This document shows positions 5,756-13,316 of a stretch of 64,000 nucleotides of DNA, in pieces. How positions within the stretch are numbered: position 1 is the stretch's first letter; each line of letters starts with the position of its first letter. Source of the stretch: Salisapilia sapeloensis CBS 127946 (lineage: Eukaryota > Protista > Oomycota). Location of the stretch: the NCBI GenBank assembly GCA_023334545.1, contig JAADVB010000019.1, positions 1 to 64,000 on the forward strand, given 5' to 3'. A program made the position numbers and the translations under genes. Below the pieces are notes generated by a model. That model searched no databases, was not told where the DNA came from, and saw only the letters and a list, made by a program, of their open reading frames with translations.

Positions 5756-7022
5756 ATGCTGTACAAGAACCCGAATGCGATGCCCAAGCATGCCGACGGG
5801 GCGGTGTTGCATCTCGGTGTGAAAACAGGGGACGGTACGCGTTGGTTTTATTAATATAGATATTTTTATATATTTATGTGTGCGATGCCATGCGCTGCAT
5901 ATCGTGGGTAGTTGCAAATCGCATTCTATCTGTTGGCAGTTTAAGTCGAGCTGAGATGCTGTCTTCCTTTCTCGACGACAACTCTGTCAACAAATACACA
6001 TCCGAGAGAGGATTTGTCACTTTCACCGGCACTAAAGATGGAGTTTTTGTCTCCATCATTGCCACTGGAATGGTTCGAACCTTTACATCTTTTAAAAGGA
6101 ACTTTGAAGCGTAACATTTAATAAAACACAGGGATATCCAAACATGGATTTTGTCGTGAGGGAAACGAGAGCTATTGTGGAAGGTCCAATAGCCATCATT
6201 CGGTATAATTTATATCCTTTCCTTACCAATTCCAGCACCAATCGACTGTCATTCCATCTGCGAATAGATTCGGCACTTGTGGTGGTCTTAAGAGAGACGT
6301 AGCTCCTGGAAGTGTTGTAGTCAATGGTAAAGGATCCATCGCTGTGATCCGAAATCCAGACGCTTTTTTTGACGATGAAGACAAAGAAGACTCGTATCGT
6401 TTTAGTCGTATCAAACCAGCTTCCGATAAGCTATCCACTGCGGTAGGCAACACAAACAAAGTATAATAGGGACTACTCTAATCTAGCCTGCTCTTCGTAT
6501 GATAAAGCTATTCAACGACATGGAGAATAAGAAAGCAGGCTTGCATTCTCTACCGTCTCTTGCTTCTGTACAAGATATGGAGCAACTGAACGTTTACAAC
6601 GGTCTTAATGCTACTGCTTGTTCCTTCTACAGCTCCCAGGGTACTTAGAACGTCACATAGCTAATTGCATGATGAGCTGATGTTATACAGGCCGTATTGA
6701 TAGTGCTTTTGACGACCAGAACCAAGGTCTAGTCGAGAAACTCATGACGCAGTACCCCGACTTGTATACGCTTGAGATGGAAACGTTCCACTTGTACGCA
6801 TCATCCTATCCACATTCACATACGTAGGCTTCTACTAACCTCCTCCCATTCAGATTCGATCTGGCACACAATAGTCGAGGTTCTGTCTCGGCAGCAGCCG
6901 CAGCTTTAGTACTCGCTAATCGCTCAAGCGGCCAAGTCGTGGAGGAACAAGTTATGAAAGCTGTGGAACGTCATTGGGGTCAAGTCATCCTCGATACACT
7001 AGCCCAAGTCAGTCTTGAATGA
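5756..7022 (+). CDS. udp: Uridine/purine nucleoside phosphorylase (PNP_UDP family), multi-exon
   Basis: Spliced translation MLYKNPNAMPKHADGAVLHLGVKTGD|VANRILSVGS...RGFVTFTG...SIIATGM|GYPNMDFVVRE...IIR|FGTCGGL...TLEMETFHL|FDLA..SRGSVSAAAAALVLANR. GT-AG introns include 5835-5911 and 6203-6267. This gene is not captured as a single ORF in the ORF track. Confidence 0.85.
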
Positions 7023-7145
7023 AACGAAATAGCACAAGCGAATGGAGACAAATGGAATGGATCATTATTCATTGTCATACACAGTTTCTTGCTGTCAAGT
7101 TTTTCTACTTGATCATTTTCTCGCATCTACCTTGGTGCTTCCTAC

Positions 7146-10100
7146 TCAAGCATTCGACAGCGACGATGGACGGCCGACAAAGCTAAAGCCGTCAAAGTCA
7201 TTGTTCGTCTGTGCGCCCTGTGGCTGTCGAGGCATCGCAAGCGTGCCTTCTCGGTCGCGGGGCGTAATGTCATTGTTATGGCGTGGCGCGTAGTGCGTGT
7301 CAAGCTTACCGACGCCAGGGTTGAACGGCGGCTCGACTCGTTTCTCTAGTAGCTCCTGCCAGTTCATGCTTTCAAAGAACGGATGGTTGAGCACTTCATC
7401 GGCACCGGACGGTCCACTCCCGAGACGCATCATCGGGTCTCTCGTCAGCAACTAGTAGACAGAGATAAGTACATGCAAAAAACTATATAAAACAAACAAA
7501 CGTACGCCTCGGATGAGCGACACAGCCTTGTCCGAGAAACTTGGTGTGAATGTCACCCACTCCTGCTTGAGGATCGTCTGGAACATAATGTCGCGGTTAC
7601 GATGGTAGTATGGCGGCTTGCCACCGATCATCTCGTACAGCAAGATGCCAAAGCTCCACCAGTCGGCAGCTTTACCATACGAGTTACCCTTGAGCAGCTC
7701 CGGTGCAATGTACGCTGCTGTGCCACAGAACGTCGTGGCGCCCTTTAAGTCCGAGACACCGACCTTGGACAGTCCAAAGTCCGTGATACGCACGTGGCCT
7801 TCGTGATCTAAAAGAACGTTCTCGAGCTTCGCATCACGATAGATGATGTCGAGGCTATGGAGATGGGCGATGCCAGCCGCCACTTCTGCAGCATAGAAGC
7901 ATGCCCAGTCTTCGCGGAATTTGCGTCGACGACGGAGGTGGAACGCCAGAGACCCGCCGCTCAAGTAGTCCATGACTAGATACAACTTGGAGTCGCTTTG
8001 GAAGGCGTAGTGGAGCTTGACGATGAACGGGTGGTGGATCTCCGTCAAGATCTTTCGTTCCGCCATCGTCGTATTCACCAGTCCAGACGACACGACATGC
8101 TGTTTCTTGAGTACTTTCATGGCAAATGCTTCTCCTTGTCGAGGTGGCGTCAACTTGCGACTGAGAAAGACTTTCCCAAAGCCACCTTGTCCGACGACTT
8201 TCATCAGCTCAAAGTCTTTCACCGTGATCTGAGCCTTGGTCTTATCACTCTCGACCTTTCGACTTTCCTTACTCGCTGCTTTGTTCAGTGGTTTATTCGG
8301 CAAATAGTACGACGGACGAGACTTATCATCTGGGCTCACAGCAGACACCTTAGTCTCTTCCTCTGCGCCACCAGCAGACATGTCACTCGCTTCATCAGCG
8401 TCCGTCTCGCCTAGCACCAGGATATTTGATTTGCGTCGTGCACGTCCGCTCTTTCGCTTTCGTAGCTCTGCACGAACGTGCTTGACGACTGCAGTCATGC
8501 CAGGTCGCTCGGGATTCGCTCCGACGAACGCAAAGGCTGCTCGCTCTGCCTTTTCCAGCGTTGCAGGCGTGCTGTCTGCTTCTTTGTTCGGAGGCATGAA
8601 GCCAATCGAGAGGCAGACGCATCCGACACGTGCTTGGCTATCGACGATCTGTGCACCAAGCGATTCGAAGGCACATTCCCAATTGATCGCTCGACGTCCC
8701 AAGAGCTCTAGGACGCTCGGACTTTCATTCCCATCAATCTCATGCTTACTCTCGATGAACGCAATGCGATGCACTTTTTCCCGTACATCGTCTTCAAATG
8801 CTTCAACAATGGACTTGGCAAGTGTCCCACCTTGTGCAAACGCAATGATGGACACTTGTCCACGACATTTCGCGACAAAGTGTTCCCAAACGAAACGAAC
8901 GTGTTCTTCAGGCGTGTTCGAGTTCGGGATCGGCACGACACGTTCAAAGCCACCTGCTTCATACACGACAGCGCTGTTGCTAAATGGGTTGCAGACGATG
9001 ACACCATAGCCTTCTTCTTGCGCACGAGCAAAGTACGGAACCATGGACCACGGGTGTTCAATCGTAGTCGAAGCGTTCGTAGTATCCTGTCGCCAGAGAC
9101 CCATGGGACCAGAGTCCGAGAGGAAGAGGATCACCTTCTTCGCACTTGCGTACGCCATGGACGTGTAGAAACGACAGCGAACGGGCGAGTCTGGAGACGG
9201 AACGAATTGAGGCGTAAAGTCCAGCTCCTTCTCCATGTAGTGGTAAATGTCTTTCTTGGCGTCGGACGCAGGGACTTTCGACTCGAGAGACGGAACGACA
9301 GGGTCCGCGACCGGTTGTGGTTCGTCGAAGCCAGCGATACCGCGCGTATCAAGCTCCAAGGAATCTTCCGAGCTCTTCCGTCCACGCTCTTCACCAGAGC
9401 TTTCATCCTTCTCATCAGCTTCCACCGCGACGGACGGACGATTGGACTTGAGCGAACGAAGGTTGTCGCCTGCTTCTTCCTTTGCAGCTTCCTTCTCTTC
9501 TTCATCGCTACTGGATTCATTCGCCAAGTCCGCGAGACGCTTTTGCTGCGCCGACACGGTCCCTGTTAAGCTCATTCGAGACGCACTCAGAGGCTGCTTC
9601 TCTTCTTCATCGTCACTAAATGACGTGAAGCTCTTTTGCTGTGGTGGATCTTGGATCGTGAACGGACGCTGCGCTTCCTCTTCACTCGATGACTCGGACA
9701 CTGCCTTTGCTTCCACCTCCCGCGGCTCATCGACAGGTTCCAGCGCTTCCACCTCTTCTTCCGATGCTTCACTCTCATTCTCTACCACCTCTGCCTCCTG
9801 CTGTCGAGCAAGACGAGACGGATAAGCAGCGTCCTTGTCGCCACCCACATCGATGCCGTCTGGTGTCTGCATCACTGCTAAAAGCAGCGTTCGTGCGCCT
9901 TCCGACAGCGCTTCGAGCTCATCAAACGCCGTGTTCTCGTCATCCATGTCACCATCATCCATATCTTCACTCTGTCCTCTCGTCATACCCTTCTCCTCGC
10001 TTCCGTCTTGCACACTCGATGCAATGGCAGCAGTAGCACGATCATTGAGTCCCGTACCACGTAGGTTATGTCCACAAGCACCACAGAATCGAGATCCAGT

Positions 10101-11621
10101 GAGCACTGCATCACAATTCGGACAGCGTTTCTTCGCCACTTCCGGTTCATCATGCACTGCATTCAATTTGCGTAGAGCATTCATCCATTTCGATCGTTCT
10201 CGATCGTTATCCGCGTAGACGTAATACGGCACTTGCTCTGACGTCATGAACATGAAGCCAAAGGGTTCTCCATCCCACTTTTGCACATCTTCGACCGTCA
10301 CTTCAGCAAGTGGTTTCCCACGCGAATTATTCGCCATGTCATAGTCGGCAAAGTACGAGATAACATGTCCACGCAAGACGAAGTATCGCTTCTTCCAACT
10401 CTTTCGTTTATGACCTTGCTTTGTCAAGTACCCGGCACACGCGACAGGCTCTGGGATGTTAGCTGTCGCGCGCTTGACACTTGCGAGCCACTTTTGTTGC
10501 TCGCCGACAGTGTCTGCACTAGCGTAGAAGACGTTTCCGGTGAATGTCTGGAACATGAGACCGTTGCTTTCTCCGTCCCATGGCGCAACGGAGCGTACGT
10601 CGACGTCTGAGACAGCGGATTGGTTCTCTCGATACGCTTGTTGGTCGACATACTGCTTCAAGGACGTGCCATTGAGGACGTAGTAGGCCATGCGTTGACT
10701 CGGGACCAAATGGCCGCGTTTCGTCAAGTATCCTTCGCAGCTGACTTCCTCCGGTTCGTCGTAAAACTCGCCTAGCGCTCGCATCCACTTGTTCTTCTCA
10801 CTTTCCGACGCAGCGTAGACATAGTATGGGATCTGCTTGGATGTGTGGAACATGAAGCCATGTGCGACACCAGTCCATGGTGCAACATTCGCGACTGTAA
10901 CCATACCATATCGCTTACTCTTGCTTTCATCAGCAAAATACTCGAGGACGTTACCACGCAAGACAAAGTATCTTGTCTTCCAATTCGTAAAGACATGACC
11001 TCGCTTCGTCAAGTAGCCTTCACAAATGATTTCCGATGATACGTTTTCAGGGATCGAAGAGACTTCTTTATCGCCTCCTTTTAATCCCATGAGATCCATC
11101 TTAAAGAGACTTCGACGTGACGAACTACGTCGATGGCCAGAAGCATTTCCGTCGCCACTACCAGGTGCAGGCGTCGAGACGTTCGAAGAGCTCTTGGAGG
11201 GATGCCAAGCATTGTTCGGACCGAGCGAGTTGCGTTGTTGCTGCTGCGATGGTAGATTGAGAATGTCTGGCGAGCTCTGGTTCGCAACCATACCGGAGAG
11301 ACTTGGATTCGAGCTCGGGCGTGTCATGGATGGTCGAGGTGGCGGTTCTTGCGTCGATTCCGTCGGGTTGGGTGGAGGCGGAGGAGGGGCTCGGGAGAGT
11401 AGATTGCTAAAGGACATGCGGTTCGGCTGTCGGTCGTGGACTTGCTGGGCCTCTTGGAGGAAGGCTTGCGTGGAGCTGGATCCCCCTCCGGCCGACAAGG
11501 ATCGTCGCATGGATTCCCTTCGAGCGTACGAGTTCGGTGACGTGACATTCACGTCTTCGACGCTTTCATCGTCATCATACTCGTCCGACGTGCGATGTGC
11601 CGTGGATTGCTCGGTGCTCAT
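7146..11621 (-). CDS. AGC-family Ser/Thr kinase with 3 PH domains, Zn ribbon and Arb2/FAM172A-like domain
   Basis: Kinase motifs GQGGFGKV, AMKVL, YRDAKLEN, DFG, TFCGTAAYIAPE and C-terminal hydrophobic motif FDGFSF. Three PH starts GYLTK(R/Q)GH. CPNC..CGAC Zn ribbon. One intron at 7452-7505 (gtacgt...ctactag) joins IRG|LLTRDP. Confidence 0.92.
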
Positions 11622-13316
11622 GACAAATCAACTTGTGATCAAACGTCTTAAACGTTGGTCGTAAGTAGACTTCCGTTGTTGGTCGAATAACCTAATGTAA
11701 TAACGAATGAATACGTTGGTTCGAACTCTTGTTACGAGCGAGCACGATCACGGATGAAATTATTCTAGATCGAGTACTGGCTCGAACGGATCGCCTACGT
11801 ACGATCTTTATCGGATGTACACGCCGTACGTAAGTATAAAGAGTATCGATAGGAGCCTTAGATCCAGGGGTTTGCTCACAAGTGATCAGATAGAGGAAGG
11901 GCTGTACCTGGTCTACGTGGCTCGCTCCTCGAGCGCGATCTCCTGAAGAAGAACGGGCGAATCAAGTTATGGCCTCGTCGGATCGACGAGCACTATTTCT
12001 ACCCACTAACTCTGGGTATAGGAACACAAATTAGGAACACTAAAAGACGATCCGACGATCTGAAACGGATACTCGCTGCTACCTTCGGGTGACAAGTCCA
12101 CCGTCCGGCGAGCTTTCCACCTGCTCTCGAGTCGAAGCGATCGGATGTGGTAATCGATTTTTAGATGTGTGTATTACGTCGTCGAGAAGAGTTGTAGTTT
12201 ATGTAGATGTAATGTAGTCGAGTAGGATGGAAATTTTGATAAATAACGAGGATAGATATGGATACGGGTAGATGTGGATTTTTAGAAGATAGAGGATACG
12301 GCCGTGTTACATTGCTGGTCGAAGCAACACTTTTCTTCCCGCTGTGTCTATCGACGCTCGTAGCTTCCGAATGGTTACTATTAATAGATAATTTTTCGCA
12401 TAGCTATTGACAAGTGGATGACGGCATCTTGTGACACATGAAGAAGCGTTCGTTTGTACTGAACTTGCAAGGGACACAGCGGTGGAACTTTGTGCCAAGC
12501 ATAGCACAAGGATGGAAACATGTCTATTGTGCAAACCTTTTTGATTCGATCACGATTTGACTTGTATATCTGCTTTGCAATTAATCGTCTAGTCCTCTCT
12601 AGTGTCATCTTCATGGTAAGACAGCCTTGTGCTTTTGATTGCATTTTATGTGGATAGCGGCAAATTCCAGAAAGAGAAACAGCAACGAACAAATATATCG
12701 TGCTTGTCTTTCAACATGGCAACTAAGTCCATAGATAGCATGAAAATGCTATATTTGTGCTCTTACCTGCATATTTAGAGAAATAGAATGCCCTGATTCT
12801 TTGTCAAATACACTTCTTTTCTTCGTTGACATGTTGGTATCCTACGCGTATTTCTTGTAGACTACATCAATGCTGTAAAGTTCACAAGTTTTAATCCAGC
12901 GTTGATACTTATTTTGCATTATATGATGGATATGACAAACAAAGTTTTGGATGCATGCTTCAAGCTGAATTATTACGCAAATGTTTCTACTAGGATAAGA
13001 AGTATCCAAAATTGCTTTCAATCCATAAAGCTTGATCGCTTCAGTCAAACAAGGTTCTACCTTGGACATAGTTTCGGCCCAAGCTAGATGAGATAGAGAA
13101 CTCTGGGTACATTCATATTCTACAGTATGCAGATTTATATAACAAAGATGAACAAATGAACCACTGGTCATCTTATTATATGCACAGACGATGTGGGCTG
13201 AAGCGTCATACTAGTGAGTACAAGCGACTGTTCGTGCTAGCAGAGACGAAATATCAATTCCACTCAAATAGACAATATGAAAATGTATTCCTTTGTATAT
13301 TAGCTTAGATTGGCAT

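Follow-up and report, generated by a model that had tools for sequence, protein, structure and literature searches.

Arb2 domains joined to AGC protein kinases have been on record in oomycetes since 2010, because Judelson & Ah-Fong (2010) listed Arb2 as an accessory domain of two Phytophthora infestans kinases of this group, PITG_06776 ("ARB2, C2, FYVE") and PITG_01365 ("FYVE, ARB2") (PMC3019232). The authors remarked that Arb2 occurs in no other kinase, and described the type as absent from diatoms, ciliates and apicomplexans (PMC3019232). PITG_01365 was also the query with which the authors of PsZFPK1 found that protein (PMC10381902). Here, we describe a gene from the oomycete Salisapilia sapeloensis CBS 127946 that encodes three PH domains, a zinc ribbon, an Arb2 domain and an AGC kinase in one polypeptide. 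It lies on the minus strand at positions 7146–11621 of a 64,000-nucleotide stretch (contig JAADVB010000019.1, positions 1–64,000; hereafter the window). This long, PH-containing form was not singled out in the 2010 study. A preliminary description of the window, made from the sequence alone, had stated that no characterised fusion of Arb2 with a kinase was known; this needs qualifying, given the P. infestans fusions listed in 2010 (PMC3019232) and the knockout and localisation of the Phytophthora sojae kinase PsYPK1 in 2020 (PMC7010300).

PsYPK1 has 870 residues with a kinase domain at 542–861, outside which its authors noted "no known domains" (Qiu et al, 2020, PMC7010300). Its residues 2–303 are necessary and sufficient for binding the Gα subunit PsGPA1 and also control its cytoplasmic and nuclear distribution, and the knockout forms fewer sporangia and oospores and is less virulent (PMC7010300). 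Outside the kinases, the Arb2 domains of the class II histone deacetylases Hda1 and Clr3 form dimers through a hairpin that protrudes from the fold; Hda2/Hda3 and nucleosomes (nucleosomal DNA/H2B) dock on these domains (PMC5036196; PMC7793584). In Hda1C, a helical insertion of Hda2 occupies the amphiphilic cradle of the Arb2 domain (PMC7793584). FAM172A homodimerises and binds AGO2 (PMC10205598).

The window gene consists of two coding exons and specifies a product of 1,473 residues (163 kDa). An uninterrupted open reading frame (ORF) of 1,389 residues (11621..7452) covers the PH domains, the zinc ribbon, the Arb2 block and most of the kinase, and a second ORF of 101 residues (7451..7146) follows in the same frame. 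The sequence between them, GGC/GTACGT...CTACTAG/TTG, corresponds to a 54-nt phase-0 GT..AG intron (7452..7505, GTACG..CTAG, after Gly1372) with an in-frame TAG inside. Its removal fuses ...AVSLIRG with LLTRDPMMRLG..., restoring kinase subdomain XI as expected, and the spliced product ends in ...FDGFSFVGRPSSLSNA, 10 residues beyond the hydrophobic motif FDGFSF. Eight ORF-called homologues stop at ...LIRG/V or ...LING/V; since these frames read on into valine at this point, the same intron position is implied for them. An in-frame stop codon, TGA, 9 nt ahead of the ATG at 11621 fixes this ATG as the start codon.

RNA contigs agree with this model. Three runs of the same organism (zero differences) and one run of a relative of ~96% identity each gave a contig that spans 7000–11693 unbroken, and all four omit precisely 7452–7505. 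The loose 5′ ends of these contigs, beyond 11693, place at 11910–11939, or at 11803–11832 in one run; we therefore place an intron of the 5′ untranslated region (5′UTR) at 11692..11907 (GT..AG), with an alternative donor at 11802 in run X1, and the 3′ end of a non-coding 5′UTR exon at 11908..11939, which continues further upstream. The two donors, 11907 and 11802, were each used in different runs of the same organism. The gene is real, conserved and expressed, and its PH, Arb2 and kinase parts share a single transcript. The preliminary description had named RNA evidence for two separate genes as grounds for abandoning the fusion; what we found is one ORF and spliced contigs that run end to end in all four runs. 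That the fusion is an artefact of two genes or of misassembly is refuted by this single ORF, by the RNA contigs and by the same domain order in oomycete homologues from independent assemblies; nothing was found in its favour, and the chance that it is correct is negligible. Every element named in the preliminary description was recovered at roughly the place given for it; the coding intron and the 5′UTR intron had not featured in that description.

The block between the acidic linker and the kinase (residues 785–1059, 8445..9269) is a true Arb2 domain rather than a generic α/β hydrolase, as the preliminary description had proposed in calling it Arb2/FAM172A-like. It matches Pfam PF22749 with 57.5 bits against a gathering cut-off of 26.8 (E 1.8e-15; profile positions 74–253 of 260). 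An AlphaFold (AF2) model of the region, built from 23 orthologues, adopts the α/β-hydrolase fold with a predicted local distance difference test score (pLDDT) of 83 and a predicted template modelling score (pTM) of 0.86. Foldseek comparison with Swiss-Prot models placed ARB2A/FAM172A-family proteins or S. pombe Arb2 in all of the top 10 positions (E 4e-18 to 1.6e-12, query template modelling score 0.62–0.71), with ARB2A/FAM172A homologues at 4e-18 to 1.6e-15 and S. pombe Arb2 at 1.2e-13. The Arb2 domains of Hda1 and Clr3 ranked next (E 7.5e-8 to 5.4e-7), and the best ordinary hydrolase, ABHD2, reached 1.5e-5. Unrelated hydrolases, whose better match the preliminary description had named as grounds against the assignment, thus fell behind ARB2A, Arb2, Clr3 and Hda1 alike.

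Against solved structures, Hda1 and Clr3 supplied the top five Foldseek matches. In VIA-align, Clr3 scored Z 19.9 and Hda1 Z 18.0, compared with at most 14.0 for other hydrolases; these best solved matches (PDB 5J8J, 5IKK and 6Z6F/6Z6O) cover Z 16.6–19.9 over ~200 aligned residues at 10–11% identity. The relation to Hda1 and Clr3 is visible only by fold, because searches of PDB chains with the single Arb2 sequence or with a 23-sequence profile gave no match at E up to 10. In both deacetylases, the domain is a non-catalytic docking or dimerisation module attached to an enzyme, located C-terminal to the deacetylase as opposed to N-terminal to the kinase in the window gene.

With ARB2A/FAM172A of animals and Dictyostelium and with S. 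pombe Arb2, the window domain shares the fold, the Pfam family and the motifs GYG-V-NP, EEH..VW, IAF..S.H, NW and GC..S.G. Those proteins are stand-alone, of ~300–420 residues, and carry AHSYGG; the window domain has AFAQGG and two long-family insertions and is located inside a kinase. A profile of the window domain retrieved stand-alone members of the Arb2 family in which three of the four motifs quoted for FAM172A in the preliminary description, EGYGVIVLNP, AHSYGG and ALTDSVH, can be read letter for letter; SPEEHAIYVWDHF was not found in this exact form. The two insertions are unique to the long family, and one of them is a conserved hairpin, AVVYEAGGFERVV. Purifying selection on the domain is strong, with 46 positions invariant from Saprolegniales (Saprolegnia) to Peronosporales (Phytophthora).

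The most conspicuous change in the domain is at the nucleophile elbow (AFAQGG, residues 927–932, 8826..8843). We aligned 205 family members to the domain profile, comprising 52 proteins of the long family, 33 PH-less Arb2-kinases (the short family) and 120 others that are mostly stand-alone. Serine occupies the elbow position in 78 of the 120 others (AHSYGG) and in 6 of the 33 short-family proteins, where glycine prevails (23/33). In the long family, the position is filled by Ala (37), Gly (6), His (5), Gln (3) and, once, Ser. Because the elbow serine is absent from it, the window Arb2 domain is probably not an enzyme, and the free variation of this position within the long family further disfavours catalysis. 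Although the nucleophile was lost, Asp/Glu173, Ser174, His176, Asn94-Pro95, Trp197, Cys217 and Ser221 (domain numbering) show little or no variation across the long family, and the stand-alone relatives have most of these residues as well. Judged from this pattern, they may line a binding pocket or have a structural role.

Two alternatives start from these residues. The domain could still be a working hydrolase that employs another nucleophile: an acid (Glu957) is conserved along with His960, Ser958 and Ser1005 hardly vary, and the elbow serine persists in the one long-family and six short-family members. We consider this very improbable, since a catalytic position would not be expected to change freely between Ala, Gly, His, Gln and Ser. 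The other alternative treats the domain as a pseudo-hydrolase sensor in which a small molecule or lipid, bound in the old active-site pocket, would control the kinase allosterically. Plants possess sensors of this α/β-hydrolase type in GID1, D14 and KAI2, and the presumed pocket-lining residues of the window domain are conserved despite the loss of the nucleophile. However, Arb2 proteins have no known ligand, the AlphaFold model discussed below contains no confident Arb2–kinase contact, and the conserved residues are equally explicable as structural or as a protein interface. A sensor role is accordingly unlikely in our view.

The kinase domain begins at residue 1137, and its exon-1 part (residues 1137–1372, 7506..8213) contains all catalytic motifs: GQGGFGKV, AMK, YRDAKLEN (7818–7841), DFG and APE (Pfam Pkinase, 209.6 bits). 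The T-loop is of the PDK1 type, TFCGT (TFCGTAAYIAPE, residue 1297, 7698–7733). Exon 2 encodes the end of the kinase and the AGC C-terminal tail (residues 1373–1473, 7149..7451; stop codon 7146–7148) with the hydrophobic motif FDGFSF (residue 1458, 7179–7196), which is present in 34 long-family proteins; Pfam Pkinase_C was not detected in this exon. The best PDB kinase matches were the RSK1 N-terminal kinase, S6K1 and Akt2 (E 2.6e-72 to 2e-71), and because these values are nearly equal we do not assign the domain to a single metazoan AGC sub-family. The protein terminates 10 residues past the hydrophobic motif and has no second, C-terminal CAMK-type kinase domain, so the database name "RSK p90" is misleading.

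With Akt/PKB, SGK, S6K and the RSK N-terminal kinase, the window kinase shares the TFCGT T-loop and an F-x-x-F-S-F hydrophobic motif, and with Akt also the principle of PH targeting. It differs from these metazoan kinases in having three PH domains ~650 residues away from the kinase with Arb2 in between, in reading D-A-K-L-E-N instead of D-L-K-P-E-N, and in lacking a second kinase domain. Akt/PKB places one PH domain immediately before the kinase, whereas here a zinc ribbon, a 260-residue acidic region, Arb2 and a 77-residue linker intervene between three PH domains and the kinase. The K-L-E-N catalytic loop was found in 36 of 36 detected loops of the long family (35 of them YRDAKLEN) and in 17 of 26 of the short family; YRD[AL]KLEN is common to both.

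The N-terminal part of the protein is modular. After a weakly conserved Ser/Pro-rich region (residues 1–190, 11052..11621; identity to orthologues ~0.2, no Pfam match), PH domain 1 (residues 195–290, 10752..11039; Pfam PH 60.1 bits) and PH domain 3 (residues 395–485, 10167..10439; 64.3 bits) display basic β1–β2 loops, KRGHVFTNWKTRYF and KQGHKRKSWKKRYF, respectively. The PH1 loop is conserved, and that of PH3 is invariant in 18 of 18 aligned oomycete sequences. PH domain 2 (residues 294–386, 10464..10742) scores 19.8 bits (E 1.2e-3), which is under the 25.1 cut-off yet covers the whole profile; its basic loop is degenerate (KRGHLVPSQRMAYY), the WKxR part being lost. A zinc ribbon of the form C-x2-C-x10-C-x2-C follows (residues 497–520, 10062..10133; Pfam Zn_ribbon_3, 27.2 bits), and all four cysteines are invariant across the 18 aligned sequences.

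In comparison with orthologues, the PH domains, zinc ribbon, Arb2 domain and kinase are highly conserved, whereas the N-terminus and the linkers show little conservation. Within the unconserved acidic region, however, lies a near-invariant motif, FDELEALSEGARTLLLAVMQTPDGIDVGG (residues 566–594, 9840..9926; 18 aligned sequences), which is probably an amphipathic helix. We identified it in 47 retrieved proteins, all of them among the 52 members of the long family; the short Arb2-kinase family contained no true match to it, and it has no match in Pfam. The acidic, Ser-rich linker that follows (residues 595–784, 9270..9839) is 27% Asp plus Glu, with an isoelectric point of 4.2 and conservation of 0.13–0.4. 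In the contig of run X5, from the relative of ~96% identity, 36 nt of this linker (9709–9744) are duplicated in frame, corresponding to 12 codons.

Directly C-terminal to Arb2 is a basophilic site, a conserved R-x-R-R-x-S followed by the strand-like N-[IV]-x-V-[IL]-G-E-[TA]-D (RARRKS-NILVLGETD in the window gene, residues 1060–1074, 8400..8444). It matches R-x-R-x-x-S and provides an AGC/PKA-type consensus in cis; the basic cluster RKRKSGRARRKS is also found C-terminal to the domain. A flexible linker with a YYLP..KP..KP motif (8214..8399; pLDDT <35 in the two-domain model of an orthologue) leads to the kinase, so that Arb2 is flanked by long flexible linkers on both sides. Based on their conservation, the helix motif (FDELEALSEGARTLLLAVMQTPDG) and the RARRKS-NILVLGETD site may have a part in regulation. 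Speculatively, the helix motif might contact Arb2 in cis, similar to the Hda2 insertion in Hda1C.

The same order of three PH domains, zinc ribbon, helix motif, Arb2 and AGC kinase occurs in oomycete proteins labelled "AGC/RSK/RSKP90 protein kinase" from Phytophthora kernoviae, P. ramorum, Pythium oligandrum, Hyaloperonospora arabidopsidis and Saprolegnia diclina. Their Arb2 domains are 45–77% identical to that of the window gene and the P. ramorum kinase domain is 83% identical; FDGFSF is shared, and several have the same intron position. A search seeded on the Arb2 region retrieved 48 proteins, from oomycetes wherever the source was named; all combine PH with Arb2 and most also match Pkinase. 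The genera named among them are Phytophthora, Peronospora, Hyaloperonospora, Plasmopara, Pythium, Lagenidium, Aphanomyces, Achlya and Saprolegnia. Public records of orthologues are already annotated with PF22749, and the gene is the orthologue, in a new species, of an annotated and published but functionally unexplored family.

An exhaustive profile search extended the set to 870 relatives, many of which pair Arb2 with an AGC kinase and have no PH domain. Named sources of this PH-less type are Saprolegnia, Thraustotheca, Albugo, Aphanomyces, Plasmopara and Pythium, together with the ochrophytes Nannochloropsis, Aureoumbra and Parmales; in some paralogues, C2 and FYVE domains are placed between Arb2 and the kinase. 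The ESM Atlas holds an "Arb2/Protein kinase" cluster of 245 members, mostly Oomycota. The Arb2–kinase module is stramenopile-wide and comprises several paralogous lineages.

PITG_06776 (Arb2-C2-FYVE-kinase) and PITG_01365 (Arb2-FYVE-kinase) resemble the window gene in having Arb2 N-terminal to an AGC/AKT-type kinase, in Arb2 domains that group together, in a K-L-E-N catalytic loop (YRDLKLEN) and in the T-loop T-[FI]-CGT. Unlike the window gene, they lack the PH domains, zinc ribbon and acidic linker and carry C2 and/or FYVE between Arb2 and the kinase; identity to the window gene is ~30% in Arb2 and ~48% in the kinase. The window gene shows the features of the stramenopile Arb2-AGC group, namely an AGC kinase preceded by Arb2 in the same protein, an Arb2 domain that groups with other kinase-linked ones and the K-L-E-N loop.

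The Arb2 domains of the long family form a single clade in our tree (Shimodaira–Hasegawa-like approximate likelihood ratio test [SH-aLRT] support 100), which is nested among PH-less kinase-linked domains. A 56-row cluster (SH-aLRT 92) unites it with most of the short family. Twenty-nine stand-alone FAM172A-like sequences are set apart, with the window domain in the kinase-linked half; the rows of this half that appeared stand-alone were, where examined, truncated gene models. The window domain differs from FAM172A/ARB2A orthologues: it has no elbow serine, is embedded in a 1,473-residue kinase and occupies a separate tree position. We infer that the long sub-family gained three PH domains, a zinc ribbon and the invariant helix motif at its N-terminus. 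The simplest history would have an Arb2-AGC unit arise in early stramenopiles and diversify in oomycetes, with one paralogue gaining the PH domains and zinc ribbon.

PsYPK1 itself can be placed in this family. Translation of the gene-specific sequence in the primers and guide RNAs used for it (S2 Table, PMC7010300) gave MADSRR, YILCMNADDA, LYVWDN, IISRAQ, DLIKVIG, NFDAEFT, DFTFNP and DSMRKR*. P0262 from P. infestans (875 residues) holds 8 of these 8 peptides at matching positions (1, 87, 298–303, 304, 548, 833, 861 and 870–875). It contains a full-length Pfam Arb2 match at 133–372 (131 bits) and Pkinase at 549–804. By way of this orthologue, PsYPK1 is an Arb2-AGC kinase, and it is the only Arb2-bearing kinase found in our analysis with genetics and cell biology. 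Its fragment that binds Gα takes in ~70% of Arb2 (133–303 of 133–372) and ends within the domain at the YVWDN helix. The orthologue of PsYPK1 in P. ramorum carries the database name "FAM172A-like". We also considered PsYPK1, which is of similar size, as the orthologue of PITG_06776; this was rejected, as the primer-derived peptides place it in a separate Arb2-kinase lineage. The PsYPK1-type Arb2 domain, not recognised by its authors, concerns proteins outside the window (P0262, P0163 and P0084).

Taken together, we think it fairly probable that the window gene encodes a membrane-recruited 163-kDa AGC Ser/Thr kinase of the long sub-family within the stramenopile Arb2-AGC group, in which Arb2 serves as a non-catalytic docking or regulatory module. 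PH1 and PH3, with their basic K-Xn-[KR]-X-R loops, would bring the protein to membranes with acidic phosphoinositides, where the kinase would be activated by phosphorylation of its T-loop and hydrophobic motif. Akt, SGK and S6K are switched on by phosphorylation at both these sites. Tethered beside the kinase, Arb2 would act as a non-catalytic platform that picks partners or substrates or dimerises the kinase. We propose this role by analogy, because Hda1, Clr3 and FAM172A dimerise or bind partners and a region of PsYPK1 that takes in much of its Arb2 domain binds a partner and sets localisation. The RRxS site just after Arb2 would be a likely AGC phosphorylation site, possibly an autophosphorylation site. 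Paralogous Arb2-AGC kinases carry other lipid-binding modules (C2 and FYVE) instead of PH, and this alternation fits a membrane-directed kinase family in which Arb2 is the constant partner.

Several observations weigh against this interpretation. An AlphaFold model of the Arb2-linker-kinase portion of the P. ramorum orthologue (36-sequence alignment) has domains with pLDDT ~90 but a linker below 35 and a pTM of 0.51; with these values, no fixed contact between Arb2 and the kinase is predicted, and the model neither supports an autoinhibitory contact nor argues strongly against one. The hairpin in the modelled Arb2 domain (domain residues 99–113) is an added element confined to the long family. 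Our literature search found no study of the long form or of an orthologue. PsYPK1 belongs to a separate lineage that keeps the elbow serine (AYSFGA), has YRDLKPEN and the T-loop TLAGSAEYLAPE and lacks PH domains, and its Gα-binding fragment includes a 130-residue N-terminal extension absent from the window gene. Because the lineages are distinct, the analogy with PsYPK1 is suggestive only.

These differences also bear on the alternative that the window Arb2 region docks Gα as in PsYPK1, so that the kinase would integrate G-protein and phosphoinositide signals and be localised accordingly. The necessary and sufficient PsGPA1-binding fragment, 2–303, does include Arb2 residues 133–303 (PMC7010300). 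However, it comes from that other lineage, and since it has the extra extension and cuts the Arb2 fold, the contact with Gα may lie outside Arb2; we regard Gα docking by the window protein as improbable.

The preliminary description had offered another reading, in which Arb2 recruits Argonaute/small-RNA or histone/histone deacetylase complexes and the kinase couples phosphoinositide signals to silencing or chromatin. The nearest structural relatives of the domain are indeed ARB2A/FAM172A and S. pombe Arb2; FAM172A binds AGO2 and governs its nuclear import (PMC10205598), and the Arb2 domain of Hda1 has a micromolar affinity for histones (PMC5036196). The basic cluster after Arb2 would also suit such a role, and the related Arb2-kinase PsYPK1 moves between cytoplasm and nucleus (PMC7010300). 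Yet the site of Argonaute binding has not been traced to the Arb2 fold, nor does such binding define the domain or count as established for the fold in Hda1 or Clr3, and the kinase-linked Arb2 domains stand apart from the 29 stand-alone FAM172A-like proteins and have lost the AHSYGG elbow. Every paralogue pairs the Arb2-kinase with readers of membrane lipids (PH, C2 or FYVE), which points to membranes rather than chromatin, and among oomycete kinases Gα is the sole partner that has been mapped to a region with Arb2. The proposed link to Argonaute, small RNA or histones derives solely from the name of the domain and is speculation; we hold it to be unlikely.

A broader proposal than the docking role favoured above for this one protein is that the nucleophile-less Arb2 domain is the common docking and localisation module of an entire set of stramenopile AGC kinases, whether accompanied by three PH domains, C2-FYVE, FYVE or no further domain, or of the PsYPK1 type. 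In the long form, Arb2 would then deliver a specific client, either Gα or an Argonaute/chromatin complex, to a kinase activated by phosphoinositides, or shift that kinase from membrane to nucleus and back. Although we rate this as rather unlikely, it would, if true, amount to a signalling logic without counterpart in animals, fungi or plants. Some oomycetes are major pathogens of crops and fish, and there is interest in their kinases as targets for fungicides; the hosts have no equivalent of a kinase family in which an Arb2 pseudo-hydrolase is always present. The membership of PsYPK1, with its roles in G-protein signalling, sporulation and virulence, gives this family its first experimental handle.

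We noted some additional features around the locus and among its relatives. The RNA contigs extend ~870 nt past position 7000, and this transcribed sequence beyond the stop codon (about 6130–7145, minus strand) suggests either a 3′ untranslated region of ~1 kb or an overlapping transcript; no ORF of at least 80 residues was found between the stop codon and position 6000. No tandem repeats were found within or upstream of the gene. In P0277–P0284, P0288 and P0289 (Phytophthora fragariae, P. cactorum and Lagenidium), an Arb2 region of the PsYPK1 type is joined to a Rho-GAP domain (PF00620); these models are probably merges with a neighbouring gene. In P0204, an Arb2-AGC kinase model from the ochrophyte Nannochloropsis oceanica (1,071 residues), the part N-terminal to Arb2 matches thioredoxin weakly (25.2 bits). 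Finally, in a divergent relative (L001:1-6919, GCA_963681725.1), two PH-Arb2-kinase genes are arranged head to tail on a single contig, a tandem duplication of the long form.

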